A DNA stretch of 64,000 bases from Oculina patagonica. Taxonomy: Eukaryota. The DNA lies in assembly GCF_052425735.1 (NCBI RefSeq), contig NC_135762.1, positions 5,952,001 to 6,016,000 on the forward strand. Reading direction: 5' to 3'. Made by a program: the position numbers and the translations under genes. This document shows, piece after piece, positions 28,871 through 61,724 of this stretch (the stretch's first letter is position 1; each line of letters starts with the position of its first letter). The notes under the pieces were generated by a model that was not told where the DNA came from, did not search any database, and saw only the letters and a list, made by a program, of their open reading frames with translations.

Positions 28871-30971
28871 TCATCCAGACTTCAGTGTTGTCTCTCCAGT
28901 GACAGCTAGCTTAGTGACATAAAATGAAATGGAAACATTGATTTTATTATACTGTTCAGTAATGTATACAATTCACCCTTAGTTTTACAGTCATTTTAGA
29001 ACATTATTTGATTATACAGTTTGCATTTCTGAATGCTGATCAGTTGAGAGTGTAAAAGATGTGAGCATGGTATATTAATAACCAAGCTGCAATGTACAAA
29101 GTTAGACAGGCAAAATTTTTAGAAGGCTTTGAAATTAAATGTTTTTTCAGCTATGACTTTAATAACATACAAGACGATAGATTTTACTCATAACAGCTTA
29201 AAGAGCTCTAGTCTCTTGACTAAGCAAGACCATACTTAACTTAGTTATTTTTTAGGTTATACTTTACTGGAGTTAGTCCTTCATGATATTTATGGTGGTT
29301 TGGTTTCAGTCTAACTTAACTTACCAGATATAAAATAGCTCTGTATTTGTCTCCAATTAATGCTGTCCTGAAGACTAAAGAAAAGAGAAGAGAAATTAAT
29401 AGGAGTATTTTGTTCTAACCAGGTGCAAATATATCAAATAATGTAGACAGAACTGGTTTAAGATGGCTTCATATGATTGTAGACCTTCCTATCACTGATA
29501 TCCTATCAATTCTATCACAGCAAACCAATAACATTGACAAAAACTGTTTAGCACGAATGTATGTAGCAGCAACCACTGATCAACATGAGATCACTGTGAT
29601 GCCAAAATTAATTAATTAATTAATTGCCAAAGCTCACAAACGTACTGTCTTTTTTGGCTAAATTTAAGGTTAGTTATTTATAACATTCACACTAACTCAA
29701 TCTTCTTCACCTCCCTTCAGAGGCAAATGTGTTTGTAAAAACTGTCAGTGGGGTTCAGAGACAGCTTCAGTTTGTAAGAATTGTGGTTACTCTGAAAGCC
29801 TTTGAGGAATTTAAAATGTCATTTTAGACATAAAAAGGCATCAAAAGGTTGAATCTTAATTTATTCCTTGACAAGTGCTCCAACATTTTGTACTACCGGT
29901 ATTTAATCTTTGTCAACATCTAACTGTGAATATAGAATGCCAAAGATGAAAAGGTCGAAAAGTACTGTCAACCACATTATTTTTTATTAATATGTTATTT
30001 ATAAATAATTGGAAACAATTTACCCAAATTGATATCAGCATTCTTTGAATGATGTGGCGATATTTTAACGTCAATCTCAGATGATGTTGACAAACTTCTC
30101 CTGGTTCACACAGGGATACTACCAACACTTGGACTGTGGGTCCAGGAATTCTGTTCTGGCATAAGGACTTTATTCGATGCAAGGGAACCTTTTTTAGGGG
30201 AAGAAAAAAGGTAAACTGTAATAAATAAACAGATTGAAAACTAGTGAACAAAAGGTTTGAACAGAAACTAGTCATTTCCAAACTAGTTTGCTAACCTGAA
30301 TCTTCTACTTATATAGTAGTTTTTCTGCAACTTATTTTTCTTATAGCCAACTGTAAATAGTGTAGGTTTTGTTTTTGATTTTATAGAGATTGTAAATAGG
30401 TTCTTATTTTTGTATTTATTGTCATGTTTGTAATGCGCATTTGATTATTTTATGGAAATGCAGAAGTTGTGTTATTATTATGAAGATGATAATTATTATA
30501 ATTTTATTACTGCATAATTATTATATACCACTTTGCAAACATCTTGCGCATTCCGTATTCTGAATTTTTCTTGAGTCTGTGCTAACAGCTGGAACTCCAC
30601 TGTAACACTGTCTTCAAGACAAAGAGGGTGAAAATGTTGAGTACACTGTTGGGTTGAGTACTCATCCCCAAATGAAACAAGATGAAGTTTTATTCCTTGC
30701 TGTTCTTCCATTTGTCTGATCCATGAAGATACCCTTCCCTAGAGAAGGGAGGAAAAAGATGAAGCAAATGGCAAATATGAAGCAAACAGCAAATATGATT
30801 TGAGCTATTATATAAAGTTTATATACTTAACTAGTTTAAAAATCTTGGATTATCAGATTGTGTTCTCTTCAGGCTACATTAGGTAAAGTTGTGACTCTAT
30901 TCTGCATTTCTTTCTTTTTAATGGAGCATTTTTAAATATGTATTTTTTATATACCGGTATATTTATACATA

Positions 30972-31046
<75 letters not shown>

Positions 31047-32720
31047 CCAAAACGTTAAAAGAAACCATAAATGAGATATATTATAAAGTAAAAATTAAAT
31101 TAATAGTACACATTGATAAAACGAACCATACATGCTGTATACCAGTACTTGACAGTCCAACAAATATGTTAGGATTTCTCTTATTAATAAAAATGTCAGT
31201 GGTAGGATTGACTCTACCTTTTGGGAATCTTCTACAAAGTATAATGAATAGCGCTTTTCATTTGTTGCTGGACAGTCTTGTTCTAATACGAAGAAGGATA
31301 GTGAGGTAGTCGTACATGGTATTTGCACTGATGACTCTGACATATCTGCAAAAGAGAGGTGGTGACACCTCAGTTATAGTATGTAACAAAGCAATTGGCA
31401 ACCAAACAGAAACAATGTAGGCTTTCCTAGGTACAATATTGTTGAATAAGACCTTGCATTCAATTGACATTTTTTGGCTGGTTCAACCTTGAACATGTGG
31501 CAAGTTACAGCTTCATCATCCTTGTGCGAGGGTACTGCACTAACTATACGTCAAGTAAGGTAGTTAATAGTTAAGGTAGTTTAAATTATTATGCTGTTCT
31601 TGTTGAAACAGTTTCAAGGTGTTTTAACTAGCTTTTAAAACTGTTTACAAATAAAGAAAAACAGTGCAGCTGGTGAAGAATTCTTGGCTTTATTTAACCT
31701 ATCATGTTCATCATTGATCTCATGGATACCAAAATGTGGCTAAATAACGGTACACTACTACCAGCACCCATACTTTTTACAGGGTTGCCACAGGTCAGGA
31801 AATGGTCAGGGATAAATAAAATTCTTCAAGGCCAGGGAAAAGTCAGGGAATTTTATTTTGAGTCAAGGAAAATTGACATCTTGAAGAAATGTCAGGAAAA
31901 ATTGGCTGGAAAAAAACATTTCAGGTCAATGTGACCTCTTTGGTCAAGAAAATTTTATTTTTATCAGGGAAAAGTCAGGGAATTTTGAAAACTGATGTCT
32001 GTGGCAACCATGTTTAAATTTGAAAGTAACATGTCTTGTGTCATAGTTGATCCACCTTGAAATGCTTCTCTTTGGATTTTAATGTCCGTTATGCGGCTAA
32101 TGTTGAACAGTCGATAGCGTGAGAACTAATTATTAGCAGCGGTACATGATGGCTTACTATAAATACTGAACTACCCTATCGAACCCTATCCTTGATAAGC
32201 ATAAACAAACACGACTGAGACCAAGATACTTACTACATACAGGAACCTTCGTTCCATCTCGTCCTGCAGCACCGGGAGTGCGTTGATCTATTGTTTGACA
32301 TAAACAGTCTCTAGATGACTGATTATCTCCAAGAGCTGGCTCTGGCGTTTGAGGAACCCGCACTAGTCCAGTTACAAGAGTCTCTGAAAGTGCCGAACCA
32401 AATGGTTCAGTTTCACTGGCAGACATTGTTGCCGACGCTTCGAGTGCCGAACTACCTCGTCTTTGTTCACGTTTTGTGTCGATCACCTTGCCACACAAGG
32501 GGCACTTAACATCAGTTGCACGAGCTACAGCAGTTCTACTCCTAGTGCAATCGCATGTCTCATTTTCGCGGAATGTATTATTTGTATCTTCCCCGTAAAA
32601 CGGTGATCGTTGTTCTGCAGATTGTGGTGTTGGAGGTTTCCTGTTGTCATCTTCTACAAGGGTTTCGCACGGCTGCTCGCCACTTGCTTCCCCTATTGCT
32701 AAAACCTCTTGTTGGTTCAT
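28871..32720 (-). CDS. Cytosolic UPA-like protein A (adaptor A): low-complexity N-terminus with CPLC, UPA-like domain, no death fold
   Basis: Exons 32720-32234, 31345-31218, 30738-~30529, 30188-30024, 29367-29325, 28905-28871, phases 1,0,0,0,1. Exon-for-exon paralog of the gene at 40202-43732 (LCLEDSVTVEF ~ LAIKDVLTVRF; RIPGPTVQV ~ RVFPGASVKL; both have a 43-nt exon ending YFIS/YFS). YSLYFVEDS...EEQQGIKL resembles the UPA segment of the neighbouring receptors. The start codon is uncertain. Confidence 0.7.
30972..31046. repeat. (TAT)n microsatellite, about 25 units
   Basis: Pure TAT/TTA run inside an intron of adaptor A. Confidence 0.95.
31780..32012. mobile_element. hAT-like MITE
   Basis: CAGGGTTGCCACA ... 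TGTGGCAACCATG; internal CAGGGAAAAGTCAGGGAATTTT repeats. Confidence 0.6.
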
Positions 32721-33641: not shown

Positions 33642-36600
33642 ATGCGGATTTGGCAAATAGGAAAGTGTATTTTTATCTGTTTTATGGTAAGTTTATCGCC
33701 CTTTATTTTTTGACCAAAGAGTCAACTTAACAAAGAGTAGGGATATGTTATATTTTGAAATGAAAGCACGCTTATTGAATGTGAACATTGTTTTATGCTT
33801 TACCAACGATCTCAAATCCTAGATTATACAGACGAAGTGAATATTTCTTTGACCTGCTTTGCACCTTTTAAAATATGCAGACACACACAACCATTTTCAT
33901 GTTTTCCTACAGGTCAACCAAGCCTTTGCTGCACAGGTTTGCCAAGATGACCAACTTTCAGTAGAATTTCCAGATGGTAATATTACCTGTTTGAAGTGTC
34001 CAATCTGCCCTCCAGGATCTGGTGCAACGGCCCCTTGTGGCAGCACAGTAGCATACAATGCCTCAGTTGAGTGTAAAGATTGCCTGCCAGAGCACTATTC
34101 TGATTCATTCTCCTCAGAGAGTTGCAAGCCTTGCTCCACATGTATGCCAGATGAAGTCATTGTGGCAAAATGTACTAAACGTTCCGACACACGTTGTAGC
34201 TGCAAGCCTTGCCCAAAGGGGTATTACCGTAATGTAACTATGTCCAAATGCCTTCCTTGCTCAGGCTGTTGCCTGGATGGTAAGGATGTTGTCGTGCCAC
34301 AGTGTGTAAGTCAAGGGATGCCACAAACTCAATCATGTAGTTACCACAAGAGTAAACCCTGTAGGTCCAAGTGCTGGTACGATGAGATGACAATTAAAAA
34401 ACATGGTGGCAAGCACATCTGTTTGCCCTGCCCAGTTTGTTCTAATGAATTTGGCCTTACCAAGCCTTGTGGAGGCTTCATTTATGATGATGTGGTTCCC
34501 AAATGTGAACGGCCCACTTTGGGGAAAACGTTTATTAATCAACAAGGGATCCTGCAGTCTTGCAAAACCTGCTCAAATGGAGAAGAAGTCATTGTCAATT
34601 GTTCTGCTAAATCTGATACAATTTGTGGTGGATGCAAGCCAGGTTTCTACTTTAATGATCAATCAAAGAGCTGTGAGGAATGCTTTTGGTGTTGTAGCCA
34701 TGGTGACAGTCAGAAGATAAAGAATTGTATCAGAGAAGGAATGTTATTTGCACAGGTTTATCATACTTCTCTACCCAGACAGCTTCTTTTGCCATCGCAA
34801 GTTAATATGCAACTTGGTCAAGTTAATCAAGAACAAGGATATCTAATGGCTTTCTTGAAACTTGATAAATCAACAATCAGTGCATCTGGTGCTTTTTTAA
34901 TTATGTTTCTCTTGGCTATAAGTTTTTTTGTTCAAAGAAGAAAGGATTATGGAAGTAAAGAAGGAAATGTTAATAATTACGAAACAATGGAGTGTATGCC
35001 ACCACAGAAAAAATGCCTCCCCGAAAATATAGAAACAGAGCAAACTAGTGGTGAGTTAAACTATTAACCATTCATTAAGGCTTTATTTTTTGTGTGTGCA
35101 ATGCTTTTTCTCTTTCGGTGTACATTGCTTTCCCCTTTATTCTCAGCTTGATTGCTTGAAAAGAACATTTTCTATCTCCATTTTGTTAGTTGTCATTTCT
35201 TTGTGAAGAGATAGACACTATCAACTGTACCCTGCCTCTTTAACCATCTTTGTTGTAATATTTAGATTGTGCATTGTTAGTCTAATTATTTTATATATAT
35301 CTGTGTATGTTTTGATGATATATTGTACTCTTTATAGATTCCAAGGAAGTGGACTCGGAATACCCTGTAAAACACAGTCCTGGCCATGTAGTATTTGAGA
35401 AGACAGGAGTTGAAGTTATTTCTCTTGATAGCAACAAATCTGCCCTTCAACATGTGGCAATTAGTGATTTCTTTTTGCAAGCCATTTCAGACTGCCTGGA
35501 TTTTCCTGGTTTGCTTGAAGATGGTGAGTTGTGTCTTAGCCCAATTATAAATTTTTTTTCAAGTACCAAGTTGGATGGACCCCTTGAGGTTCAGATACCC
35601 CATGGTGCAAATATGGTACTCTCAAGTAAGAAGTGGAAAGTCATTCTGAAGGAGTTCCGAAACAACAAGTGGGTTGTTGTTAGTGATGTGGATGGGCATG
35701 GAGTAAAAAAGTTTGTCCCTAAAAGCAACCATGTCAGTTTTGAGACAGATCACCTCTCGACATTTGCAGTTGTTGGATACTGTGATAAGAATTCTTCATC
35801 GTCAGTGTTGAAAAGAATGAAAGTTATGGCATTCTGCAGTGAGACCAGAGTTGGAGAAGATCTTGTTGTGAGGCTGTACTGCTTTGATGATTGTGAATGG
35901 TCCTTTGAGGTAAGCTTTTGAGATATGCAAGGTCCTTTTACATAACACTGGATTTTTGGTAGGGCTTGTTTAAAATTGGTCCACCAAAGCTAATAAACTA
36001 CCTACGGTACTTAGATAGTCCAACCACAGATAAAAGTGGAAACCGGCGGCAGTTTTATCTGAACCCTGTGTAGTGTAAATGGGCCCCAAAATACATAAAT
36101 CTGTCTAGTTTTGCTATTCATATCCTTTCCTGTTTCTTACAGGGAACACGCAAAAATAGTGGGTAGGTGTTAAAACTCCTTAAATGAAGTACTGGGGAAT
36201 TGAGGTGATAAAGAAGGGTATAAATGATCACATGGCTTGAAGGAGGGACCACAAATAGTAATATTATAACTCTTTGCTCATTAAAAGTCACTCCATAACT
36301 TCCAATAACATCCTCAGCCACATGGCCTTTGGGTATAGTCTTCATTTGTGGTTATGTTACTTTGTTTAAAGAAAGGAGGGATGTATTACACTGAACATAA
36401 CGTCTGTCAAAAAGCATGTTACTTTATTGGTGCATGTATCTCTTTACCTTCTCTTTACGAAACAGAGACTGATGAAAGCAGAACAGGAGAAGGGAGGAAA
36501 GCTTATCTCTTCAATTGAATCTCTTGATTTTTCTGTTACTTGTGAAGAAGATGTGGACATCGCTGTTAAGGATAGTGGTGACTGGAAGCTTGAAAGTGGT

Positions 36601-39830: not shown

Positions 39831-40201
39831 TTAAGAACCTAATTAAGAACCTAGTGAGCCTAATTTTACACTAAATACCTTTTATATAAGAACCTGTTTA
39901 GGCTAACTTGAAAAAACCTAGGTTCTCATATGCGGGTTAATAACTGCTTTTCTAAAGAAAAGTTTTAATTATTTTTTTTGTCATTGTCTGTCAGGCCACC
40001 AGGCCACCAGGCCACCAGCTTTTTATCAGTGGGAAGGAACTTTATTCACAAGATTTGTGTACAATCAAATGACATTGTGCTAAAATCAATTGAGGCAATA
40101 CCACTATAAGAGCAACAAAGTTATACAAAACTTAAATTGGAGTTCTTAATTGCTTAACAATGAACACTGACATAACAAAAAGACACAACAAATGGTATTG
40201 A

Positions 40202-43200
40202 TTATTTTTTGCCGTTTTCATACAGTTGCAAACGTTTTTTTACCAAAATCTTTGCAGCCTCTTGATTTTCACGTGATTTCTGCAAAATTGATATGAAAAT
40301 ATCCAAAATGTTCCCTTTCTTTGGAATAACCATAAGAAGCTGGTCAACACGATCTGCTGGACGTGGAAAAGATCTGATAAATGCTTTATCATCAGCAGTT
40401 AAGATGTTGTACTGATAAAGGAAGAAACAGATGGATGAAAGATCACCAATACTTTCAATCAGATCCACATGACAGCTCTGTAAAGTATCTCTGTCCAGTT
40501 TTGGCATCGCTGTTACTATCATTTGAAAAAAAAAGGAACAGCTGATAATTAACTTCTAATTGATTTTGTTTCCAGTTTACAATGATTCAACACAATCATG
40601 CACATAATGATAGAAGTAAAACACTGTAAAAGCACTTTTTTGCAGTAAATAATCTGTAAAATTGAATAAATAAATTTAAAGGTGGCTCTCTGTGATTTGG
40701 ACCATTTTTAAATGTGACCACAGCTAGCCCATTTATTTTGTCGTTACTGTACACTCTATTTCTTACATGGGAAAACGAGCTGATAATGATGGTGTACACT
40801 GACATCATTGAATAGCCAATCAATCAGTCAGGTATAGCCATGCACAGCACAGCACATCACATGGTTCTAGATTATGGGTAGGGGAGACGTTATTAGTAAT
40901 GACATTTTTTTACACTATTACTACATGTACCATATACAATTCATTTAAATTGCAAAACACATATAAGCTGTAAAGAAGTGATAAAAAGGTTCAATAACTA
41001 TACAGTAATGCATAACAATTAATTGGCAAAACACCTTTTATCTTATAACAGTACATTTTTTACCTGAGAAGTATTGCCACAAAGAGTGAATAACTGGCGT
41101 ATGAGACTAAAAGTGAATAAACAATAACAAGCGTTTAGTCCAGAATAACGTTATCTTCATTATTTAAATGGGTGGCATATGTGGCATACTGTAATTATAT
41201 CTATGTAATAAATGCCTGTTACACAGGTCCAAACTGTATGATACTTTATGTGTTATAAATAAAGTGTAGTCAAAAATTGCAACTGAAAAAAATGTATCGA
41301 AATTGTTTCAGTGTTTGTCTTGAAAAGAGCCTTACTGGAACAGTTCAAAGAACACAAACCATACCTTGGTGGGAATAATAATGAGAAGCTTTGCATTTCC
41401 AGTCAACAGGGTCATCCTCACTCTGTCTTCCTGAAGTGCGTTTTGCTCCCCGCTGTATTTAATGGAAAGCTTGACAGAAGCACCAGGGAAAACTCTTTCT
41501 TCACTTCTAGCCAAGATGTGTTGAACATCAAACGTCGACACCTAACATGTGACAAATGTTAACTTTTAAAAATGTAGCAGGTTCTAATCGATTGTTATTT
41601 TTTTCAACATACCAAAAATAAAGTACAGTATTACAGATCTTTTTAACTGGTAGATTCTTTAACAATTAAGAGACAGGCGCATTTCTTAAGGCATACTGTT
41701 CCGGATTTTCCTATCGAATGTTTACTACTTACATTTGCATTTGTAACTTGTCACAGATTTAATACAAGTTGATTCGTATTTTCTGAAAGTGTCAGTAGTG
41801 AGAATAGAGCTTTTAAAATTATACAGTGAGTTGATCTTTGACGCAATGTACTTTACACTTATTTGAAACCTATGCTAACACTAAATTAAATCAACAGAAA
41901 TATACGTACGCCAGCTGGGCTGATTACGGAAAAGCTTTCCCCGTGATCCATCTCAAATCTTACTGTTAACACATCCTTGATGGCCAGTTGGAGATGATGC
42001 GACACAAACACGGATCCGTTTTCTTCAATCACTACCGCGATTTCGGTTCCCTCATAAGCAGCAGCCTCTTCTTGGCTTATTTTAGCAAATACCTAAAGCA
42101 AGGGATCAATTTTGTTTTCAAATTGACTACATACTTAAATTTGTAAGTGTATCTAGTATATACTTATTTATAAGCGCTCAACGGAGTCAATTGGGTTAAA
42201 GTAAGCGATATTAGGGCTTTCCACAAGTTGCTCGGCAACTTTTTGGCAACTTTTCAGGATTCGAGCAACTTTTTCCCCTTCGAGCAACTTTTTTCCACTC
42301 GAGCAACTTGTTGCATTTTGGGCAAATTACAGACCGAAGATCTCCGAAGGTTATCCGAGCGTTGTTCACAGGCAATACGAACTTTTCCGAAGATTTACGA
42401 AGTTTGCCGAAGACTTTCCGAGGAACATCGAAGTACGTTTCAACTTTCTGCTCTTTCTGGTCCTCTTTCTGCATTAAAACATTACAAACTCGTCAGCAAA
42501 CATGACGTCATCGACTTCACGATTTTTCTCAGTTAAAGAAATCCTTGTTATTTAACAAATTTTCCCCTTAATATGTTATTAAGATACTCCTTTTGCTGAA
42601 AAATTGCACAAAACTGCTTAGACATCTTACCCTCAAAGGGAAACTAGCATATATTTAGAGAAATTATCTTGATTAGAAGCAACGTTTTGGATTTTTTGGA
42701 GCAACTTTCAAACAACTTTTATTATTAAAAGCAACTTTTTCGGATTTTTGGAGCAACTTTTGAGCAATTTTTTGAGAAATTACGGGCAACTTTTTGAGAA
42801 ATCTCGAGCAACTTGTGGAAAGCCCTAAGCGATATCGTCTTGTTTTCCTATCCTGTGAATTAACTAACATACAATCTGCAAGGTCATAGATTTTTTTTCC
42901 CAATATACACATTATAAAAAGCAACAGCTTACCAAGTGAAACCTTTCACATGGAATGAAGTAGATGGTGAAACTCGGTTCCTTTCTTGAGAGAATGCCCC
43001 TCTTGAAGACCGCCAAACGGACTTCGAGACATTCGTGGCTTGATTTCAACTTATCTAAAGAAATAAACAATGGAAGAATGAAGATAGAATATGTATTGAA
43101 AAAAGAAACAGCAGACGGGTCTCACTTCATCCTCGGGTAAACGGTTTTGCGAGTAACGAAGTGGCAAAAGGTATTACTTGAATCAGTTAATCAAGAATAC

Positions 43201-43732
43201 AATATTCTAGCGGGGAATTGATGAAGCTTTTTCAACAATGTTTAGAGTACGTACCACAAGTTCGGCAATTATCGGGTTCTCCATTTTCGTCATGTCCTTC
43301 AGTAGGCGTTTTTGAAAGTTTACTCCAGAGGCTTTGAACTTGTCCCAAAGATGTGGGGCATCCAATAGCTAAACTCTCTCCAACGCCCTCTTGTAGCGGT
43401 AGACCTGAAGTGGTATTTTCTGTCGACAAATGTTGCATAGAGGTCGTGATCAACTGCATGGAAGGGTCGTTTGGTGGAATTCCCTCTTGGCTGTCTGGGT
43501 TCATTCCTTCCGTATCGTCTTGAGGAGGATGGTACCCCTCGCGATGGTCGCTACTTCGAATAACTTGTGAATGATGCGAGTTGTTACTGTTCGTGGACAG
43601 ATTCCCGTTACATATTGGGCACGAAATGTTAACAAAGCCTCTGGAAGGTATTTGGACGACTCCACAGTTGGCGCAATCTGCCTCGACCGCTCTTCCGTAA
43701 TTGCCAAAGCCAGCTGTGTTGTCGTCCATCAT
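40202..43732 (-). CDS. Cytosolic adaptor B: Zn-ribbon (CxxC-x14-CxxC), disordered linker, UPA-like domain, C-terminal CARD
   Basis: Exons 43732-43255, 43054-42933, 42092-41910, 41541-41365, 41106-41064, 40509-40202, phases 1,0,0,0,1. The last exon (LQSCHVDLIESIGDLSSICFFLYQYNILTADDKAFIRSFPRPADRVDQLLMVIPKKGNILDIFISILQKS) has a six-helix CARD pattern. Confidence 0.8.
42212..42827. mobile_element. hAT MITE in intron 2 of adaptor B
   Basis: TIR TAGGGCTTTCCACAAGTTGCTCG; perfect 8-bp TSD AGCGATAT (42204-42211, 42828-42835); subterminal GCAACTT arrays. Confidence 0.9.
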
Positions 43733-44557
43733 TACTGAATGCTTTACAAGAGTGAAACGGAACAAGGGAAATGAATACACTCCCCGAAACTTACTCCTTC
43801 ACTCCCCATGATTAAACTGATGAATATTTTTGGCGATGAAAAGAATTTATTTCGCTTTGCTGAAAAACCACCTTTCAGCTCCGCCAATGACAATCGAGAG
43901 ATAAGTCATTCTGTGATATGATTGGTTAACTAGAGACATGAGTGGTTGGGGGATTCCCCAACTTCTGGAGTCCTGTCATAGAAATAGTCGCGCTTTCATT
44001 TGTGTGCTCCATCCCACGTCTTGCTCCCTGGAACATGCGTCGAATGCTTTAATCTACAGATTTTTCATCGTAAGTAGAACAAAATTTCTTACATTTTATC
44101 CTAGAAGCCTGCTTAAAGAACGTGCGACTGACTGCATCTGGAATCTGCAGTAATAACCTGATCTCCGGAAATGTCAAATGAACGCCACGTTTTCAAACAG
44201 ACTCATCTAGAAGAAAAAAATGTTGTCTTTTATGTAGTTAAAAAATTATCGCTTCTGCTGTCGTTAAAGCAATTTAACATAAAACAGTTTGTCAAAATGT
44301 TCAAAGGAAGCAGTTAAGATTTGAACCATGCATGCTTCCCTGTAAACAGTTTTCGAGGCGAGGAAGTAAAGCGAGGATATTTGTGCTGAGTAATCAACTT
44401 CTAAAACAATGACGTCTGCTGAAAACTCGATTCGTCAGCACATTTTGGGCGCTTATTTATCCAACGATGCTTAGTGTGCATTCTTATCATAATTGTGATT
44501 TGCAAGTTGCTTTAGTCAAGATCGTAATTTTTTGCAGGGCCTGGATGTGTGGAGATC
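43733..44557. promoter_or_regulatory. Divergent promoter/5'UTR region of pair 2 with a kappaB site
   Basis: CCAAT near 43884, ATTGG at 43921, palindromic kappaB site GGGGATTCCCC 43949-43959. Probable non-coding first exon of receptor B ending at GTAAGT near 44070. Confidence 0.6.
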
Positions 44558-47500
44558 ATGGCCAAGTTGACGGTGCTTCTCGTCCTACTAACGTTATTCG
44601 TAAGTATTTCCGCTTGTGTAGTCTTACCGGGAATGTTCATGGCCAAAATGTCATTTTCAATACAAATTTAAGAATTTTTTAGATAGGGAATCTGCTTAGA
44701 AATTCGGTAAAGATGAAGCAAAAACGATTACAGGGAGTATAACCATGTTTTTGGTACTTGTTGCTGAGTTAGGGCCAGCTCTATGGCAACCAGTTCAACA
44801 ACTACACAAATTATAATACACTGAACAGTGAAAACAATCAAGAAAAGTGGAACAACAAAAAGCCTAAATGATACTCACTCTTGCCTCTTGACAAAGCATG
44901 AACCGAGTATCAAAAAACACTTATCCCTGTGGTAAACATCTTCCAAAGGTTTTTAGTCTAACAGTTACATGTATATTACAGATTTTTAGTATACAATCTT
45001 TATTTCTTTCCCACTAGCTATCCTGTGCATGTGTGTATTCACTGAGGTGCAGGTTCAACCAGTTCACAGTTGAAAACGTGTTGGGCAATTTGTCTTGTAT
45101 TGACTGCCCTGCTTGTATGCCTGGATATGGTTTGAGTCCACAATGTGGTAATTATGTAAAATATGGTACAAAAATTGAGTGCAAACCATGCAAACTGGGG
45201 ATGACATACTCTGCTACACATAACATTGAATCATGTCGCCCATGTGGAATTTGTTCAGACCATCAAAAAGTGATAAGGAACTGTACTTTGGAATCTAATT
45301 CAAAGTGTAATCACAGCTGTAGCAAAGGGTTCTATTATGAGGAAGTGACAGGTGACTGTAAAGCCTGTTCATTCTGCTGCAGTGATGGGAGAAATACTGT
45401 GAAAGATGACTGCAAGGATATGCCATTTTATAAACAGTGTGATGCCAATGAGATCATGATCAACTGTCAGCCTAAATGTCAAGACGATCAATACCTAGTT
45501 GTAACCAAAAAAGGTGCAGTGCCATATTGCAAAAACTGTAAAAACTGCCCACCGGGATCTTCACTCTCTCCACATTGTGGAAGTATTGTAGAAAACATCA
45601 ATGACATCAAATGCGTAGAGTGTATTGAAGGCAAGACATTTTTAGAAAAGCCAGGAAACCAACCCTGCAGACCATGTTCTTCATGTTCAGTTGGACAGAA
45701 AGAACTGAGACCTTGCAATCTGACCCATGACAGGGTTTGTGGCAGATGTGAGAAAGGTTTTTATAATGCAACCGGCAATGAATGCAAACCATGTTCAGCC
45801 TGCTGTAACGATGAAAATGATGTACGTATTCCTGAATGTGTTAAACAGAATATGCCAAGAAACAAACAGTGTATTTTAACCCAGCGAGCCATCAATGTGT
45901 GCCAACAGAATAATGCTCAGCATGGCGGCAGTATAATCCAAGCAAAATCTCCTGGTCTAATCATAGCAATGTCCATAATAGCAATAGGATGCTTCACCGC
46001 ACTTACAGTAATGGTGTTCTGGAAGTACTTGAAGTACCGCAAGTATAAGGGGCTGCCAAGAAGCCAGTCATTAGCTGAGTTATTGCCATCATCACTGGAA
46101 GGTGAGGTTTTTATTTTCGACACCTTATTTTAATCAACATCACATAATACTTAATGCACTATTAATAGTTACTTAATCCAGCCTGTTTTATTCCTGGTTT
46201 TTAGTCAAGCCACAAAAGAGAATTAACTTTTAATTGTTGACACTAGCCCCTTATGTAATTATTCTGTTTTCTAACCAAAACAGTGCCAAGAAATTATTAA
46301 TGGAGCTAATTGCTAAGACCTCCTGACAATATCATATGAAATAGATATGTCCAATCTGAACTTTTAATAATATTGTTATAATTAATGGTATAATGATAAA
46401 AAACAATAATAAGAATCTCAGAACAAAATCTCTCACTCAGAAATTATTATAAAGAATCCACAAGCACTCTGCAATTACCCTTTCAAAGATGGTTTACATG
46501 AAAGATAAAGGATTACCTAATATATCTTGTAAGAGCTATAAATTGTTTTTGAATGAAATTAGTGTTATTTCTTTTATACTGCCTATTAAATCCCCAACCT
46601 CCCCACTACAAAGCAATGATACTAAAGAAACTTAAAAACCTTTCCACTTTTATTCTCCTTAGAACCACAAACTGAAAGTCACTCGACAACACTGGAAGTT
46701 GCTATAGCTCATGGCTCACAAGAGTCTTTGGCTTTTGAAAAATCAGGTGTATTAGTCCAGTTCAGTGATGGACAAAGTTTCTTTAATGATGCCCAAGGAG
46801 TTAGACTAGAAATATGCTGGGTCAACAATTTTGTCAAGACACTTCAACCTGGTGAAGTACAGCTTAGTCCAATAATAAAATTTCACCCTTATGAATTGCA
46901 ATTAAGCAAACCAGCACAGGTCAAAATACCGCACAGTGCCTTGGTTTTTTACAGTAATGGCTGGGATGTCAAACTCAAAAGCTCTACATTACATGGAGAA
47001 AAGATTGTGTGGAAAAATGAAGAACAATATGAAGTTCACAACAATGAAGTTAGCTTTCATGCTGACTACCTTCTTTCTTATGTTGTGGTTGGTGCATCAC
47101 TTTGCAATGACAAACCAACAAAGAAGCGTTTGCAGTGTGCAGTCTTTGGAGGAGAGGGCAGAGTTGGTGCAAACTATACAGCATATTTATATATCTTTGA
47201 TGACTGTGAGGCATCACTAGAGGTACTTTTCAGATAGATTGTGTGGTTCACAGAAAATTTCCATACTCACCCTGCAGTACTGAGGGATTGGAAATTTCTT
47301 GGGGTCGGAAGGGTTTCCAAGGCCAAAAACTTAAAGGAAAAACCTTGGTAGGGGAGCGTATTGGAAATTTATGGGACAACTTATGTACTGCAGCTGGAGA
47401 TTGGTTACCCCCCCGGTATAATACAAAAACTATTATTGCTATGGTAGTCATGGATGCATGTTGTTAGGTGTATATAAGGGAGTGTGTTAGACAGTTCCTG

Positions 47501-50190
47501 GAACAACGTTATAAAGATATTATAATTTTGGATATTTTATAAAGTCTTAAGTGGTCAAAAGAAATCCCGAAGGCTTAATTTTATGCAACTAATCTCATGA
47601 AAATTGACACAGTGAACTAGTACACAATGCCTTTAAGAAGGGCAATGAATCACATAAAGGGAAAGTTAATGATTGAGTGAGAATAGTTTAGTCTGCATAT
47701 AGTTTTTGGAACAGCTTACTAAGGTCACTAACATATGGTCATATCACTATTTTGAACAAATGAAGAGCTATGTCATATTTGTATTGTAACTTTCAACTAA
47801 AACAACCACTGTCATATCTACTTACCACAATGTTAATGTATTCTGGGTATGGAAAATTTAAAACCCCAATAATAGCATTTTGATCATTGAAAGGACTTGA
47901 AATCCAAATCTTACAACCCTTACCTTAAGTAAGTTGCATTTTGTACGTGCATAACTGACAGTAATTTGGAATTTAGTGGCACAACAACTCTATACTTTCT
48001 ATAATCTTTAGTGTGTCTGAATTCAAAGGACATCACTATCAGCTGCACTAATTTTAAAAGTAAAATAAGACTGGTTTTAACAACATAGCTTTTCTTGTTT
48101 TATTTAACAGAAAATCATGCAAGAAGAAAGATCACATAATAGGATCCTGTTGGGTTCCCCGCAGTCTCTGTATGTGGAGTCTGTAACTGAGACGGATATA
48201 AAGATTTCTGTTAAACAACCTGTTGATGGTTGGATTGTTGGAGAGATCAAGCCAGAGGTAACTTCTTCATGTAGTGTCTGTTTCTGTACCCTAATTAATA
48301 GAAGAATTAATTTAATTCCATTATATCTGGCAAATAATGGGCTCCAAGTCTTTGGATTTTTACTGTCAGTTGGTCCAAAAATTAATTTATAATTATGCCT
48401 GTTACTTAGATAGGGAAATTACAACAAATGGCCATATAACTGACAAAACAAATTTTATACTGGGCAACTTAGTCCTTTTCCATTTTTGAGAATTTAAAAA
48501 AAAATTATAGCTCAGATCCTGTATACTGAAGGTACAAGGGAAAAGTCATTATTCAAATCAAATTGGTAATGCTTCACCCCTTAATCTTTTTTTCCAAAAT
48601 TTGAAAAAGAGACTACTAATACATGTATAATTATGAAGACTACTTGATAAGTTGCAGCAAAATAAACAGAGGCATCCAAAGAATTCTGTTGAGCTAAAAT
48701 TGGTTGTGTCACGATTGTGTTGTTTGTATTCTCACAGGTTATAACACACAAAAGTGTGAAGGAATCCTATCAAACCATACCAAGGACAGAGATACTGTTT
48801 AAACATGACAATGGTCGGAACAGAGACTTCCTTTGTATATTTGAAGTCAGCGCTGGAAATACAACCACAACTATTTGTGCGGTTACCTCAATCAAAGAGG
48901 TTTGTGTTACTTGATTTTCTATTAATCACTCAAGTACTTAATTTGATTTTAGTTGGTGCAGTGTGTGTTATATACCAAGCAGAATGTTACATTGTATACC
49001 ATAAGATTCAGGTCATTATAAGCCCCCCCCCCCCCACTTTATAAATCCTCCCAGTTATAAGCCCCCACCCCCAGACATAAGCCCCCATCCCCAGACATAA
49101 GCTCCCCTCTGCTGGACAGGGCTAAATGTTGCTTTACTATGACTTTCTAACTTAAAAACATATTTCGATCAACACTGCTGTGGCTTGTTTCAAAACGTTT
49201 TTTTTTTTATTCTGCTAATAAGACCCCCGCTCCCCCCGTCCCATTTATAAGCCCACCCAAAACACCTTACAGAGTTTTATAAGCCCAGGGCTTATAACCA
49301 GAATTTAACAGTATGGTGCACTTCGTCTGTAGTAAATCTCTGGTATTTGATTTATAGGATCCATTTAGGAGGTTTCAGGAGTGCAATCCAGGATTTAGCA
49401 ATGACAAGCACCGGCTGGTAACTGGAAGGAATCTGTGTGGTAAGTCCGTAGCATGTGCAGGGACATGACAAATAATACTATTATTAAAACTATTTTTGAC
49501 CTTCAGGCTTTTGCTAAATTTGTTTTCCCAAAAGAGGTTTGCCACACCCCCAGATCCACCACTGCAGTTACTCTTGCAGTGTAACCTAAGGTTGGTAGAG
49601 CTCTTCCCTTAGCCACCAGGTCATTTAAGAAAATGACACACCCAGCATGCACATTGACAACAATCATTTTTGGCTTACAGATCCTCTATGTATTTTATAA
49701 AACATTCTTAAAGTTATGATTGCTGCAAAAACCTTATAAATTAAGGAAATAAACTATTTTTTCACTCAACTGCATTGCCTATTGGTTTGTAAGACATCAC
49801 CATGTTTGTTTTATAACATGTAATTTATTATTGTTGTTTTGTTCTTAAGACCCCCTGATCACCGACCAAGAGAGATCATCACCTTGTCTGCATGATCTTC
49901 CAGAGGAGGTATTGCATGCTGTGTGCATGAAACTGGACATGCCACTTAAAGGTGTTGGCAACTGGCGACATGTTGCAGCAGACCTTGGTTTCCCAGAAGA
50001 GCAAATTCAGGTTTTCCGAAATGAGATGTTGACTCCTGATGGAAGTCCTTGTACTGTGATGTTGTATGCATTGAAGACTAGGTCACCGAATCTTACTGTA
50101 GTAGAGTTTGTGCAGATTCTTCAAACTCGAAAAATTAAGCGCTTTGATGTTGTAGATGTCCTTGAGCCTTATGTTTATGACCCAATTTAA
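44558..50190 (+). CDS. TNF-receptor-superfamily protein B: signal peptide, duplicated TNFR ectodomain, TM, ZU5, UPA, death domain (UNC5-like cytoplasmic region)
   Basis: Exons 44558-44599, 45018-46101, 46663-47222, 48111-48257, 48738-48899, 49358-49439, 49850-50190 in phase. Signal MAKLTVLLVLLTLFLSCACVYS; TM LIIAMSIIAIGCFTALTVMVFW; ZU5 LSPIIKFHP..PAQVKIPH; UPA KKRLQCAVF..LYIFDD; DD LD...GNWRHVAADLGF...SPCTVML...TVVEFVQIL..RFDVVDVL. Confidence 0.9.
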
Positions 50191-52325: not shown

Positions 52326-53592
52326 GAGCACATAGGCTAGTGCATTCTTTGCGTTCGCTTATCGTCTCGATCGCCTTGGAATTTTCCCGCCAATTGTCCC
52401 AGACAGTCAGATGCAGCTCATGTGATATGGTAATGAAACCTAATTGGATAAACTTGGGACACAAATAAAAGGCATTCTCTGATTGGGTAGATGGGAAAAT
52501 GACGTCAAAATTAACCAATCATACTCCAGGTACTATTTTGTAAACAGTAGCAAACAGAATAAAACCCGACCCATTCATAAAATCTACTGTCTTGCTTTTT
52601 TCGGTGAAGAAGTGAGTTTTTGTCGGTTAGATTTGACGTTAAACCTATTCGACACTTGCTTTCATCTCGTTTTTGGCCTACGAAGCTACGAGGAACTAAA
52701 CAATGCCAAATGGATGTCCTAGGAGCTTTGCTGTTAAAAACTTGTTTTTAGCCGGCGTTTGCTTCGTCGACATCTCATTCAGTAACCATGACGCAGTTAG
52801 AGAGAAGGGTAGGATTTTAACAGTTATCAGTTTGCTAGTATAGTTTCTTTCCGTAGCAAAAATTCCTTTTTTCAGCCTCTTTCGGAAATTTCGTTTGCGA
52901 ATTTTCTCCGAACGTTTGAATTCCTTAGGTGGATGACACAGGCTTCACGGCAACGCAACAGCCTCGGTTGCCGAATGTTCGCTGTGCTAGTACATTTAAT
53001 CTTAATCTTACGAGTAAGGTGAGTAGTTTTATACTAAATGTGCACCGCTTTTAACGGTATCTGTCTTTTGGTGGTTAGTGCTAATTTTGTGTTTTGAAAC
53101 CAGAGATTGTAAAAGTAGACGACGACACGTAGGCGTTTAATTCGAAAGAATGTGCTGCGTAATCATTGTTTGTGAATACAGCTCGTTTTACCGTATCCTC
53201 GCTAGAATTGTTGTGTTTATAGAAAGTCGAAGTGAAATTTCAATAATCCAAAGCCGTGAATGAAACTTAGTGAATTATGTTTTGTAGGGGCGATTGTAAC
53301 TTAAATCAAGCTTAAACATCGTACATTTGCCTGGCTGGTTGCTGCACTTGGAACTAATTGTGTTTTTTTGCCAATTTTGGCACCAAACTTTAAGTAATTT
53401 TTTATTTTGACGTTAGAGTTTGGTCTCTTCGCGAGAAGTAAACTTACTCTTAACGATACTTTGTACCAATATTTTTCATTAATAATACTGCTAATTAAAT
53501 ATACCTGTCTTTATCTGCCATAAAAACATCCTCGAAAGAGAACCGAAGTTTCCGCATAGCACTGCATCTCTAGTATTGCATCATATCAAGAT

Positions 53593-56500
53593 ATGACGTC
53601 ATTAGCGTGTTGTACATGTACAAGATTGACAGATACCTTGATAGAACAAAAAAAAATCAGTAATATGAATAAATATTTTGTTTTTCAAAAGAAAACAAAA
53701 CCAAAGTATGTTAATTTGGTAAACAATGAAATAAGTGATTTGGGAAACGCAAAAGTTAGTTTTGAAACAAAAATAAGGTTTAAAAAAGAAAATTTAAAGA
53801 CAGGTGCAACACAAGAGATGAATCATTTTTTTAAAGATAAACAACCGCATGTTTTTAGCGAACATAATAAACAACAGATAAAACAAGAGTATGATAAATA
53901 TATTGATATAATAAAGGGACAGATTGAGGCTTGGTCACAACGTGGCTCAGGGTGGGAGGTTGAAAGAATAATGGCTGCCTACTTAAATGTTGCAAGATAT
54001 CAGCCATTGCGCGGAGGAACTTACTTACCTCTTCCTGCCAAATTGGCAAAAAAGAAAGCAATTATTAACGTGCAAAACAGGGATAACGAATGTTTGAAGT
54101 GGGCTTTGAGAGCTGCTTTATTTCCACCAAGTGATGGGAAAAATCCACAAAGAACAAGCAAATACCCTGTTAACGACGGAATTAACTATGAAGGAATTGT
54201 CTTTCCTACACCTGTAAACCAGATTGACAAGCTTGAGGCGCAAAACAGCAACCTTGCGATAAATGTGTTCGGCTGAAGATACAATCGTGTGATTGTGCAC
54301 AGAATGAGCGAAAAAGAAAAAACCATTCCTCGTATTTCCCTTATTTTGATTGAGTCAGGAGAAATCCAGCACTACTGTTTTGTAAAAAAAGAAAGCGCTT
54401 TGCTTTACGATCAGAGCAAACATCAACATAAAAAACACTTTTGCATGATGTGCTTGACAGGTTTTACAAGAGAGGACTTGCTCGAGAACCACAAAAAATA
54501 TTGCAATGGTGTTAATGGCAGGCCGACAAGGATCGAGATGCCTGAAAAAGGTGAAAATTACCTTTATTTTCATAACTATAACAAACAGATGAAAGTTCCT
54601 TACGTAATTTATGCCGACTTTGAGGCATTGGTTAGAAAGATTCCTGGCTGCGAGCGTAGTCCAGAGAACAATCAAAAAAGCTACACAGAAAAGACAGAAA
54701 AGCATGAATCATGTGGTTTTGCTTACACAGTTGTAAGGAGTGACGGCAGAAGCACACGTCCATTTGTTTACAGGGGCAAAAATACTGTTGAAGTGTTTTT
54801 GAAGCATCTTTTAAATGAAGAGAAAAGAATACGAAGTAGTTTGAAAATACAAAAGCCACTTTTGATGACGGCCAAAGATTGGAAAGAACACAAAAACGCA
54901 ACAAGTTGCCACATTTGCAACAAAAGTTTGATAAGAGATTCCTTTTTAGACTCATTTCCTGTTTAAGACCATGACAAAGGTATTTATTGCGGCCAAAGCC
55001 ACAAATGTTGTTATTACGAGGCACTCAAAAAAATAAATTTTGTTGGGCCAAAAAGAGAAAGAAAAGAAAAAGACAAAATAGACCAATGGATTGCAAACAA
55101 TCAGGAAAAATGTTTGTTTTGCGCAGAACCTTTTACGAAGCAAAATTTCAAAGATTCTGTCAAAGATCATTGCCACATAACAGGTAAGTTTCGAGGATCT
55201 GCGCACAACGCATGTAATCTAAAATTGCGAATAAACCCAAAGACGGACCAAATACCAGTTGTTTTTCACAACCTGAGGGGCTATGATGCACACCATTTAA
55301 TGCAGGCGATGTCAAAGCTGCCGCTTGCATCAAAGAAAGAGGTGAAATGTGGTGCCAACAACATGGAGGTAAAATGTGTTGCCAACAACATGGAGAAATA
55401 CATTACATTTTCATTAGGTGGTTTGCGTTTTATTGACAGCTTAAACTTTCTTCAAGGAAGCCTGGATTCACTTGTAAGTGCGACACCAAAGGAGTCATTA
55501 AAAATAACAAAATCTCAAAAGTTTCTAAAATTTTGAACTTCTTTTCAAAAAGGGGATCTATCCTTACGAATACATGGACTCATGGGAAAGATTTAATGAG
55601 ACAAGTTTGCCTGAAAAAGAAAAGTTTTATAGCAAGCTTAACGATGAACACATAACTGACGAAGAATACGAGCATGCAAATAGTGTGTGGAAAACTTTTG
55701 GGTGTAAAACGCTTGGAGATTACCATGACCTTTATGTTGAAACGGATGTAACTCTTTTAGCTGATATTTTTGAGAACTTTCGCAATATATGTAAAGAAAA
55801 GTATGAGCTCGATCCAGCAAACTATTTTACTTCTCCTGGACTTTCTTGGGACGCACTATTGAAAAAGACAGGAGTACAGCTTGAGCTACTGACAGACTAC
55901 GACATGCATCTTTTTGTGGAAAGAGGAATAAGAGGAGGAATTTCCATGGTAAGCAAGAGATACGCAAAGGCAAACAATCCTTGTGTTGAAGGCTACGACC
56001 CAAGCAAGCCAAAAAAACACATAATGTACCTTGATGCGAACAACCTTTATGGATGGGCAATGAGCAAGCCACTGCCGAAAAGTGGTTTTAGATGGAAAAG
56101 AGTTATGCCAACAGAAAAAGAAATTATGAGAAAAAAGGAGTTTGAAAAAACTGGCTGGATTTTGGAAGTTGACCTCGAATACCCTGCAGAACTGCATAAA
56201 GAGCACAACAGCTACCCATTAGCACCAGAGAAAAAGAAAATAAATAAGGACTTGTTTTCACCCTACCAAAAAAAATTAATAAAAGACCTTGATTTGGATC
56301 CGCCTGACAGTGAAAAGCTCGTATTGACTCTTGAGGACAAAACTAATTATGTTGTGCATTATCGAAACTTGCAGTTTTATCTGAAACAAGGAATGAAGCT
56401 GAAAAAGGTGCACAGGGTGTTAGAGTTCGAACAAGAATGTTGGATGGAGCCTTACATCAGGATGAACACAGAATTCAGGAAAAAAGCGAAAAACGACTTT

Positions 56501-57307
56501 GAAAAGAACTTTTACAAGCTCATGAATAACTCAGTTTTCGGAAAAACAATGGAAAACCTGCGTAACCGTGTTGACATAAAAATAGTGCGAAGCGACGAAA
56601 ATAACAAAATAAGAAAACTAGTTGCTAGTCCATTATACTCAAGACACTTTCTGTTTTCAAACGATCTGGTCGGAATTGAAATGCGAAAAAGCTTGCTTTT
56701 TCTTAACAAGCCTGTCTACACTGGTATGACTATCCTTGACAACAGCAAGATACTGATGTATGATTTCTTTTACAACCATCTGAAAAAGATATACGGCTCG
56801 CGTTGCGAGCTATTGTATACAGACACAGACAGCCTTTTGGTAGAGATAGAAACAGAAGACGTTTACGAAGACATGAGGGTTGACAAAGAAAAATACGACA
56901 CAAGCGACTATCCCAAAGATCATCCACTTTTTTGTGAGAAAAACAAAAAGGTATTGGGAAAAATGAAAGACGAATGCGCAGGAAAGCCCATTGCAGAGTG
57001 TGTCTGTTTGAGGCCAAAAATGTATTCAATACTGACAGAAGACCAAAAAAAAATAAAGAAAGCAAAAGGAGTAAAAAAGTGTGTAGTAAAAAAGAAAATC
57101 TTGCACGAAAATTATTTAGAAACGCTTTTTGGAACAAAGCAGTTATGGCATGGAATGAACATACTTAGAAGCGAGGGTCATGAGATTTACGGAATGCATC
57201 TCAACAAAGTCTCGCTGTCGCCTTTTGACTCAAAGCGATGGATAGCGGATGATGGGATGCATACAAATGCTTACGGGTATAAGTTTTGCGAAACAAAGCC
57301 GACATAA
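53593..57307 (+). pseudogene. Protein-primed family B DNA polymerase with inserted endonuclease VII-like Zn domain; 2 nonsense codons and 1 frameshift
   Basis: Motifs GSGW, ExoI YADFEAL, DHCHITGKFRGSAHNACNL, ExoII FHNLRGYDAH, KGIYPYEY, YLDANNLYGWAM, KLMNNSVFGK, YTDTDS. In-frame stops at 54274-54276 and 54964-54966; frameshift near 55520-55535. Confidence 0.92.
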
Positions 57308-57316
57308 ACAGAACGT

Positions 57317-58310
57317 TTATAGCTTTTCTGGTGGTAACTGTGTATTTGGAGGAATAACAAGCAATTCTTCACGCACGAAGCCGCGCTTTGGACCATCGTG
57401 CAAGTAATAAAGCACTGGCTGATCAGGTTTAGTAACAGACCTTTCGAGGCTGTAGACTTTTAATGACCAAATCGGATCTGTTGCCCTTTTTACGCCGCCT
57501 TCTAGCTCGCCAGGTTGGTAGAGATAGCGCACATTAACGAGAGAGGGTATTTTTTTTTTCTTTCTGGCCAACAGGCCTTGTATATTTTGAGGACGGTTTG
57601 GACGAAATAGCCTTTTCTTTGATTGCAGCAGCAGGTTTTTTTCCAGTAAGACTGGTAACTTCGTTGTTCAGAGCGGTAACAACTTCGGGAAGCCTTTTTA
57701 CCCACGCTGTCGACCGCTGGCCAGATGGCAGGTTCATCTCGACACCGTACTGATAACCAAACAGGCGCCCTGCCAGTGTTTGATTAAAACGTTCAACAAT
57801 AGCTTGATCTCTGTGGATATTAACACGCCCGCGTCTAATATAGGTTTTGTGATTTTCCATTTCTTTGGTAACAGCTCCCATGAATTCGCGACCGGGGTCA
57901 ACTTGAAGCATCTGTGGCCATTTTAGTGCACTTCGCCTGTAAATTGTCTGAAAACCTTTTGCAACCTCAGTTGAATCTTTGGAGGTCAAAGGCTCGGCCT
58001 CTTTGAATCGGCTGGCAACGTCAACAACAGTCAGAGCGTATTTGTAAACTTTTCGCCCTCGCGGCAGTTTGTCGTGTGGCAGAAAAAGAAGGTCCGCCTG
58101 GTGGACCGCGTTAGGAGAAGAAACATCAAATTTTGGGCGAGGAACGTATCGTGGTGCCGGAAGGTAGATCTGCCAAAGGGCCTGCTTAACGAGCCACTTT
58201 TTAGCAGCATCTTCGGAAACCTTGGCCGCCTCGGCTAATTTTTTTATCGCTGCAATTCCCTTCCAGTAGCCCTGGGGGCTATAGTAGACTTTCGAGATCT
58301 TTGCATCCAT
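57317..58310 (-). CDS. Retroviral-type (rve) DDE integrase, frameshifted in an A10 run near 57550-57559
   Basis: HQADLL, LTVVDVASRF, QVDPGREF, IVERFNQTL. The C-terminal piece (57571-57317, RATDPIWS...FVREELL) continues in another frame. Confidence 0.88.
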
Positions 58311-58337
58311 GCGTATACAAGAAAAAAAAAGAAACGT

Positions 58338-58763
58338 TTAAAGAAACCGAAAGGCAGCGTACCCAAGAGCAAGAGCGCCAGCGCCAACAAACATCAGTTC
58401 ACCTTGTTTCTGCTGCTCGCTTGGCTGATAAAAATCAGAGAACTTGGGTTCTTTCGGAGGAATCATTTTTTTGTCAGGATGTGCCTGGTTGTAGAGTTTG
58501 AAAGCGTAGTCTGTGTTCGTGAAGTTTTGTTTCGCTTGCTCTTTTATCATTCCGTTGGTTTCGATCCAGTCGAGAAGCTTCGTGCGGTCGCGAGAGTACT
58601 TCGCGTAAGCTGCCTGGTAAGCCTCGAGAGCTTTGTCGTGTCTTTCTTTTTCTTTCAAAGCGGCGTCATCTCCGCCACCCAAAGCACGAGCAAGGTAGTT
58701 GCCGCCAATGAAAGCAGCAGCGTTTAAGATAGCTCCCCCAGCCATAATAGCGATGCTTGCCAT
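58338..58763 (-). CDS. Polinton small protein: hydrophobic Gly/Ala N-terminus, charged helix, hydrophobic C-terminus
   Basis: Intact 141-aa ORF with T-run/TATA-like upstream; function unknown. Confidence 0.7.
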   Translation of the reverse strand: MASIAIMAGGAILNAAAFIGGNYLARALGGGDDAALKEKERHDKALEAYQAAYAKYSRDRTKLLDWIETNGMIKEQAKQNFTNTDYAFKLYNQAHPDKKMIPPKEPKFSDFYQPSEQQKQGELMFVGAGALALGYAAFRFL

Positions 58764-58797
58764 TTTTGAACTTTTTTAATATATTATTAACATTTTT

Positions 58798-59771: not shown

Positions 59772-59827
59772 CGTGTTTCGTATACTTAAAAAAATAGAAT
59801 GTTTAAATGAAAATTTTTAATAATTTT

Positions 59828-61084: not shown

Positions 61085-61091
61085 GATTATA

Positions 61092-61709: not shown

Positions 61710-61724
61710 CTTCGTTCGTTTATA

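Follow-up and report, generated by a model that had tools for sequence, protein, structure and literature searches.

The stretch of DNA analysed here (the window) comprises 64,000 nucleotides of Oculina patagonica (assembly GCF_052425735.1, contig NC_135762.1, positions 5,952,001 to 6,016,000). It is GC-poor eukaryotic DNA, and the source genome measures 529 Mb. Positions 43732-40202 of its minus strand are confirmed as an expressed gene of six exons with a product of 438 amino acids (aa). The product carries conserved motifs in its N-terminal part, a middle region supported as a divergent UPA domain, and a C-terminal CARD. Head-to-head with this gene lies that of a receptor of the tumour necrosis factor receptor (TNFR) type, named receptor B, and the 438-aa protein is proposed here to act as an adaptor of this receptor (it is referred to below as the adaptor).

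Gene model and expression of the proposed adaptor

From GT/AG sites of the minus strand, a spliced model was built that runs from the start ATG at 43732 to the stop codon at 40204-40202. Transcript contigs from four public runs, belonging to four studies and carrying three organism labels, were aligned to positions 40000-43950. The five exon joints (43255|43054, 42933|42092, 41910|41541, 41365|41106 and 41064|40515) were present in contigs of all four runs; read on the minus strand, each of them has GT..AG ends. One contig joins exons 1-3 and another joins exons 1-4 together with a microexon. The exons are as follows.

Exon 1, 43255..43732, minus strand: residues 1-159 plus one base; N-terminal regulatory region, mostly unstructured, with conserved motifs
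Exon 2, 42933..43054, minus strand: first UPA beta-hairpin (LAVFKRG...FTIYFIP); match to positions 152-188 of the family hidden Markov model (HMM), E 1e-4
Exon 3, 41910..42092, minus strand: UPA, long form, carrying ISQEEAA; family HMM 191-252, E 1e-10
Exon 4, 41365..41541, minus strand: C-terminal UPA strands; family HMM 252-306, E 7.5e-6
Exon 5, 41064..41106, minus strand: 43-nucleotide microexon, UPA-CARD linker; shifts the phase and brings the CARD into frame
Exon 6, 40202..40515, minus strand: CARD (Pfam match about 40265-40492) and stop codon (40202-40204)

A model of five exons was rejected because it left the CARD exon out of frame. Addition of the microexon 41106-41064 gives an open frame of 438 codons, and the six-exon model was adopted because the frame of the CARD is restored only with it. 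The microexon was found in contigs of 4/4 runs and has a counterpart in the paralogue locus L003. An alternative donor GT of exon 3 at 41964 is not used, the joint 41910|41541 being the one observed in the four runs. The spliced protein of the window matches the family HMM from end to end (238 bits, E 7e-75), and the five larger exons match it colinearly.

The sequence features listed in a preliminary description of this DNA were all found in place on the minus strand, including the CARD as an isolated open reading frame (ORF) of 106 aa (40202-40522). That description had also considered that the CARD exon might be transcribed on its own. Since the joints link it to the upstream exons, the CARD exon lies in the same mRNA as these, which speaks against separate transcription. 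Upstream of the ATG, contigs follow the genome colinearly to a point past 43950, starting in exon 1, and an in-frame stop codon lies upstream of 43780, which argues that no coding exon, and hence no ZU5, is spliced before the ATG (the contigs do not allow the strand and the 5' end of the mRNA to be read, and those reaching past 43950 may fuse both divergent transcripts).

Two features of the introns were recorded. Each of the four runs also has contigs in which intron 5 is retained (40488-41093) and which extend colinearly over the CARD acceptor and the microexon, at a lower depth than the spliced form; they could represent unspliced pre-mRNA or an isoform that ends the protein before the CARD. 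Intron 2 holds, at 42112-42903, a repeat of high copy number that contains AAAGTTGC-type reiterations. In 4/4 runs the contig depth over this repeat is 10-100x that of the exons, and many contigs there are partial or end loosely. The repeat is probably a short element that is dispersed in the genome and transcribed.

Predicted domains, conserved motifs and family

Searching the CARD exon against 1.84 billion representatives led to full-length proteins of 398-426 aa, and further searches added relatives of 386-459 aa from transcript assemblies. Named relatives come from Montipora capricornis, M. foliosa, Orbicella faveolata and Nematostella vectensis and are annotated as uncharacterised or CARD-containing only. 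The family ranges over stony corals and Nematostella, with two coral subfamilies, for both of which the six-exon structure was recovered. A search of the whole genome of the window with the family profile matched this gene only. Isoform X2 of Orbicella (P0029) is 358 aa in length and has no CARD.

The claim of a C-terminal CARD was upheld, as exon 6 matches the Pfam family CARD (PF00619) with E 5.4e-7 and 30 bits against a gathering cut-off of 23.9. Among PDB sequences the family profile matched CARDs only: that of RAIDD was the best hit (E 1.4e-4), followed by those of BCL10 and caspase-9. AlphaFold2 (AF2) predicted the CARD of the relative P0028 as a helical bundle with a predicted local distance difference test (pLDDT) score of 75-90. 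The identity of the CARD among close relatives is 51-86%.

The middle domain is encoded by exons 2-5 and spans about 170 residues. It was modelled on P0028, the closest full-length relative, which is 42% identical to the window protein over residues 173-435, using an alignment of 12 relatives and the three exons of the window. A first AF2 run, with full-length P0028 and 10 sequences, gave too poor a middle domain and was replaced by a run on the domain only. The resulting model (pLDDT 68, predicted template modelling score 0.66) is a beta-sandwich of eight long strands. In the PDB its top Foldseek hit was UNC5B (E 6.7e-4), and 27 of the 30 top matches in AFDB Swiss-Prot were UPA regions of UNC5A-D, MACC1, SH3BP4, UNC5CL and ankyrin-1. 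UPA took first place in all three structure searches, two of them in the PDB (one by Foldseek, the other by VIA and without Foldseek) and one in AFDB Swiss-Prot. It also gave the longest alignments, which span 112-134 residues where other folds reach about 90-105; the model thus superposes on solved UPA domains along most of its length and fits them better than it fits other folds. A feature search with the ESM protein language model, made with the domain alone, placed clusters of UPA-FIIND+CARD proteins first (score 0.79), which is regarded as a lead only. These comparisons support the middle domain as a divergent UPA, with a predicted shape that resembles UNC5-type UPA more than FIIND-type UPA. 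The preliminary description had proposed a UPA-like middle region and named a fold unlike the UPA beta-sandwich as the outcome that would speak against it; the model of P0028 shows no such fold.

No ZU5, FIIND or other Pfam domain was detected in residues 1-~170 of the window protein, and likewise none in this part of three full-length relatives. The equivalent N-terminus of P0028 was predicted by AF2 with a pLDDT of <40 and without secondary structure. An H/S-F-S cleavage motif was sought before the first UPA strand of the window protein and was absent. The UPA without a ZU5 that the preliminary description had pointed to is therefore borne out, since neither the gene nor its transcript nor the relatives have one. 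Exon 1 was aligned for 21 sequences of the window subfamily (A4), with identities of 46-100% and a mean column identity of 45%. It encodes the following motifs.

43610..43675, minus strand: Zn-ribbon-like CxxC-x14-CPxC (C20, C23, C38 and C41)
43538..43582, minus strand: conserved motif NSHHSQVIRSSDHRE, residues 51-65, kept in both coral subfamilies
43388..43399, minus strand: PLQE, residues 112-115, match to the TRAF2-type consensus
43292..43321, minus strand: KLSKTPTEGH, residues 138-147, with K138, S140, K141, P143, E145 and G146 invariant in the 21 sequences
43256..43267, minus strand: third CxxC (C156 and C159) at the end of exon 1, both cysteines invariant in the 21 sequences

The Zn ribbon described earlier as CANC-x14-CPIC stands as a conserved motif of one subfamily. 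Across the 21 sequences C23 is invariant and C20, C38 and C41 are at least 90% conserved, and of the 20 closest relatives in the alignment with the window protein, 18 keep all four cysteines. The Pfam match to Zn_ribbon_FGT1_1 is below the cut-off (E 0.045), and neither the paralogous coral subfamily nor Nematostella has the Cys4 ribbon. The consensus of NSHHSQVIRSSDHRE reads YSNSHHTQVRRSxDxREE in the sister subfamily (A1) and NSHHSQVxRSSDHREG in A4, and the family HMM aligns both the NSHH...RE and the P-x-Q-E motifs of the two subfamilies.

The TRAF2-type consensus is [PSAT]-x-[QE]-E. PLQE fits it, as had been noted from the sequence, and aligns with PQQE of the family HMM. In the surrounding segment (SG-L-P-L-Q-E-G), G110, P112 and E115 are invariant in A4. 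A single P-x-Q-E occurs at the homologous site in 18/21 and 27/31 members of the two subfamilies, and Nematostella has PIQES, giving 46/53 family sequences overall; in shuffles of the N-terminus of the window protein the motif arises by chance at a rate of 4%. PPQD and DSQE, which had been listed alongside PLQE, are both present, but neither fits the TRAF2 consensus; DSQE is not conserved, and most of the window subfamily retains PQD of PPQD. The region of KLSKTPTEGH contains P-x-E-x-x-D, which we take to resemble a TRAF6-type motif.

Pairing with a TNFR-type receptor gene

The gene that faces the adaptor, and the region between the two, are as follows.

45033..50190, plus strand: receptor B, the partner gene, with TNFR cysteine-rich ectodomain, transmembrane segment, ZU5, UPA and death domain
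43733..45032, no strand assigned: divergent intergenic region of about 1.3 kb between the ORFs of the adaptor and receptor B; putative bidirectional promoter

Pfam matches of the receptor B ORFs are TNFR_c6 (1.3e-20), ZU5 (4.2e-8) and Death (3.2e-6). Seven loci were compared, namely the window, one of Nematostella (L001) and five from four coral assemblies (L002-L006). A head-to-head arrangement with TNFR_c6 ORFs was found in 7/7, together with ZU5 and/or Death ORFs in 6/7, and the spacing in L001-L006 is about 0.45-1.8 kb. In the five coral loci TNFR_c6 lies on one strand, and exon 1 of the adaptor and the CARD ORF lie on the opposite strand (ZU5 and/or Death ORFs in 4/5). The Nematostella orthologue P0020 is located 450 bp from a divergent gene for a 790-aa protein with TNFR_c6 and ZU5, and this neighbour is orthologous to receptor B (tblastn E 8e-73). 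One coral contig carries both subfamilies at a distance of 38 kb, each accompanied by a receptor of its own; the receptor-adaptor pair has been duplicated as a unit. The conserved head-to-head arrangement suggests an old, undescribed receptor-adaptor pair.

Further observations concern these loci. In Nematostella the receptor gene is followed by BMT5-like and Carb_kinase genes. In the window an ORF for a BMT5-like methyltransferase (17955-18641, Pfam 3e-35) flanks the receptor-adaptor cluster, and its order and orientation match those of Nematostella (window 17610-22000 against L001 14948-23609). A Carb_kinase-like ORF (17610-17900), recognised by eye only and lacking a Pfam match, has the same relative order as in Nematostella. 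Retrotransposon ORFs (RVT_1, RNase H, rve) have been inserted in two coral relatives (L005 15961-18051 and L006 13945-16947), either into introns that separate the UPA exons from the CARD exon or beside the gene, and in both loci the CARD ORF is still present downstream of them.

The window contains a second head-to-head pair upstream, composed of adaptor A (28871-32720, minus strand) and receptor A (33859-~38000, plus strand). Receptor A matches TNFR_c6 (Pfam 1.5e-19) and, weakly, ZU5. Exon 1 of adaptor A encodes CxC-x17-CPLC and, later, DCLCQT, which echoes the Zn-ribbon layout of the UPA-CARD gene. Comparison of adaptor A with the UPA-CARD family returned faint, non-significant matches only and no detectable CARD. 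A coral protein of 327 aa, A0A2B4RUF0, has its UPA near the C-terminus, leaving no room for a CARD, and may be of the same kind as adaptor A. The ZU5 domains of the receptors end in DHLST for receptor A (window 35700-35800), DYLLS for receptor B (window 47080-47130) and TKLGV for the Nematostella receptor (L001 ~6750). Judged by these residues, only receptor A, whose DHLST is like the H-F-S autoproteolysis motif, looks able to self-cleave among the three.

Proposed role, relation to known systems and remaining features of the window

Taken together, the gene probably encodes a receptor-proximal death-fold adaptor, built of N-terminal motifs, a ZU5-less UPA, a microexon linker and a RAIDD-like CARD, that works downstream of a TNFR-type receptor. 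The observations behind this reading are the gene model, its expression, the CARD, the UPA-type fold of a relative, the absence of a ZU5, the conservation of the motifs and the gene pairing. The adaptor would be co-regulated with the paired receptor and act downstream of it. Once activated, the receptor would recruit the adaptor by contacts of its own UPA or ZU5 with the UPA of the adaptor, by TRAFs that bind P-x-Q-E, or by both. Clustering of the UPA may then lower the polymerisation threshold of the CARD, as in the UPA-CARD fragments of NLRP1 and CARD8, and the clustered CARD would engage a CARD-bearing caspase or another CARD effector. For NLRP1 and CARD8 it has been described that the UPA associates with itself and that CARD filaments thereby form at a lower concentration (PMC7794386; PMC11874512). 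As the adaptor has neither a ZU5 nor an autoproteolytic site, its activation would proceed by recruitment and clustering and not by the release of a pre-cleaved fragment.

Several points weigh against this reading. Pfam returned no UPA family (PF17217, PF23679 or PF23640) for the exons of the window at E<=10, and three full-length relatives gave only the CARD at E<=1. With hhalign, the match of the domain alignment to a thin two-sequence UPA-FIIND alignment was insignificant (E 0.38, 11 columns). The fold was assigned on a relative of 42% identity, in a model of medium confidence, and not on the window protein itself. The Zn ribbon cannot be essential to the core function of the family because it is missing in the sister subfamily, and zinc binding by the ribbon and TRAF binding by P-x-Q-E are predicted at the level of motifs. 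Divergent pairing could mean shared regulation without physical contact. In a complex prediction with the ZU5 of the Nematostella receptor and the adaptor UPA, the partner stayed unfolded without an alignment, so that the prediction gives no verdict either way. All of the binding steps and the output of the adaptor are inferred.

The preliminary description regarded a ZU5-less UPA joined to a CARD as non-standard. The lack of the ZU5 is indeed unusual, but the order of UPA followed by CARD has a precedent in the FIIND proteins NLRP1 and CARD8 (PMC7794386, PMC3210808). The architecture of the adaptor is unusual in the missing ZU5 only; beyond architecture, it is distinguished by its conserved pairing with a receptor. 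In the literature, coverage of which is incomplete, no description of a ZU5-less UPA-CARD protein or of the cnidarian gene pair was found. By analogy, the adaptor would resemble the FIIND, ZU5-UPA-DD (DD, death domain) and RAIDD systems in its working, but it is a member of none of them.

Like the adaptor, the C-terminal fragment of CARD8 and NLRP1 consists of a UPA, a short linker and a C-terminal CARD, and the N-terminus of CARD8 is also disordered. The lowering of the CARD filament threshold driven by UPA in these proteins is the best available mechanistic model for the adaptor (PMC7794386). In contrast to CARD8 and NLRP1, the adaptor lacks a ZU5 and so has no FIIND, SF|S autoproteolysis, non-covalent ZU5 lock or DPP9-type control; it possesses an N-terminal Zn-ribbon-like motif, P-x-Q-E and a gene paired with that of a membrane receptor. 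A FIIND consists of a ZU5 directly before the UPA with an (S/H)F|S site, and the adaptor is not to be filed as one because no ZU5 or FIIND match, strands or cleavage motif precede its UPA. A Pfam search for FIIND in the genome of the window found none; control genomes were blank too, which makes this search uninformative.

In the PIDDosome, PIDD1-CC (UPA-DD) and RAIDD/CRADD (CARD-DD) bring a UPA and a RAIDD-like CARD into one death-fold pathway, with a ZU5-UPA-DD protein, here the receptor, as the likely upstream partner. The adaptor differs from it in holding UPA and CARD on one polypeptide without a death domain, so that the DD-DD bridge of RAIDD is unavailable. Its upstream protein is a TNFR-type transmembrane receptor and not a cytosolic leucine-rich repeat protein. 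RAIDD/CRADD has an N-terminal CARD and a C-terminal death domain, whereas the CARD of the adaptor is C-terminal; the likeness to RAIDD is confined to the CARD. Compared with the ZU5-UPA-DD supramodule of UNC5, PIDD1, ankyrin and UNC5CL, the adaptor lacks both ZU5 and DD: its UPA lies between the unstructured region and the CARD, and its C-terminus is a CARD and not a Death domain. No sequence-level similarity is seen between its UPA and that of receptor B. As in TRAF-binding tails of the CD40 and TNFR2 type, a single conserved P-x-Q-E(S/T/G) is placed in an unstructured segment, but the putative TRAF motif of the adaptor lies in a cytosolic adaptor and not in a receptor tail.

A more specific form of the adaptor reading is offered tentatively, as a possibility that we consider rather doubtful. 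Here a UPA machine would be split over two proteins, the receptor providing ZU5-UPA-DD and the divergent adaptor a free UPA-CARD. The adaptor would dock on the ZU5/UPA of the receptor when the receptor opens or autoprocesses and would nucleate a membrane-proximal CARD filament, and the pair would have been kept for roughly half a billion years. If so, it would represent a recruitment-activated relative of the UPA-CARD of NLRP1 and CARD8 that is wired directly to a TNF-family receptor and TRAFs.

It is unlikely that the protein is a stand-alone, cytosolic CARD8-like sensor or adaptor independent of the receptor, with the pairing reflecting a shared promoter or chromatin domain. The domain order is that of CARD8 minus the ZU5 (PMC7594595, PMC9213247), the conserved N-terminal motifs could serve as sensing or degron elements, and contact between adaptor and receptor has no computational support, the complex prediction having given no verdict. 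Nevertheless, the pairing is kept at 7/7 loci, in the sea anemone as well as in stony corals, and it has survived tandem duplication, in which both genes were copied together; without autoproteolysis of a ZU5, N-terminal degradation of the CARD8 type would destroy the entire protein.

A negative regulator or decoy, which occupies the ZU5-UPA of the receptor or caps CARD assemblies in the manner of CARD-only proteins and thereby dampens the signal, is improbable. The CARD-less forms Orbicella X2 (P0029) and coral A0A2B4RUF0, possibly joined by adaptor A of the window, suggest that the family includes modulators; the well-conserved CARD and the kept P-x-Q-E fit a signalling adaptor better. That the middle domain is a generic immunoglobulin-like beta-sandwich, the UPA matches being an artefact of a medium-quality model, is very improbable in view of the first rank and longest alignments of UPA in the three structure searches and of the sequence-feature search, which independently points to UPA-FIIND+CARD proteins.

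In human NLRP1 and CARD8, UPA-CARD is the active, filament-forming unit and is present only after autoproteolysis of the ZU5 and degradation of the N-terminal part. The anthozoan family encodes UPA-CARD directly, without a ZU5, beside the gene of a TNFR-ZU5-UPA-DD receptor, from Nematostella to reef corals. The proposed adaptor is a candidate, testable link from TNF-receptor-type sensing to CARD/caspase signalling in cnidarians, and may inform the evolution of the UPA-CARD arrangement. It bears on the cell-death and stress pathways of corals, including bleaching and disease. Pfam misses the UPA of these proteins, and a new family profile would improve the annotation of many coral genomes.

Two other features were identified in the window. 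A block resembling a mobile element extends over ~53500-63000, with an rve integrase (E 1.2e-6), a packaging ATPase of the Pox_A32 type (E 8.7e-11), a long ORF in which polymerase-B-like motifs were recognised by eye, and further ORFs without Pfam matches; it is consistent with a Polinton/Maverick-like insertion. At 4587-5720 on the minus strand, an exon unrelated to the UPA-CARD gene encodes three cadherin repeats (Pfam Cadherin 5.6e-43, FAT4-like N-terminal domain).

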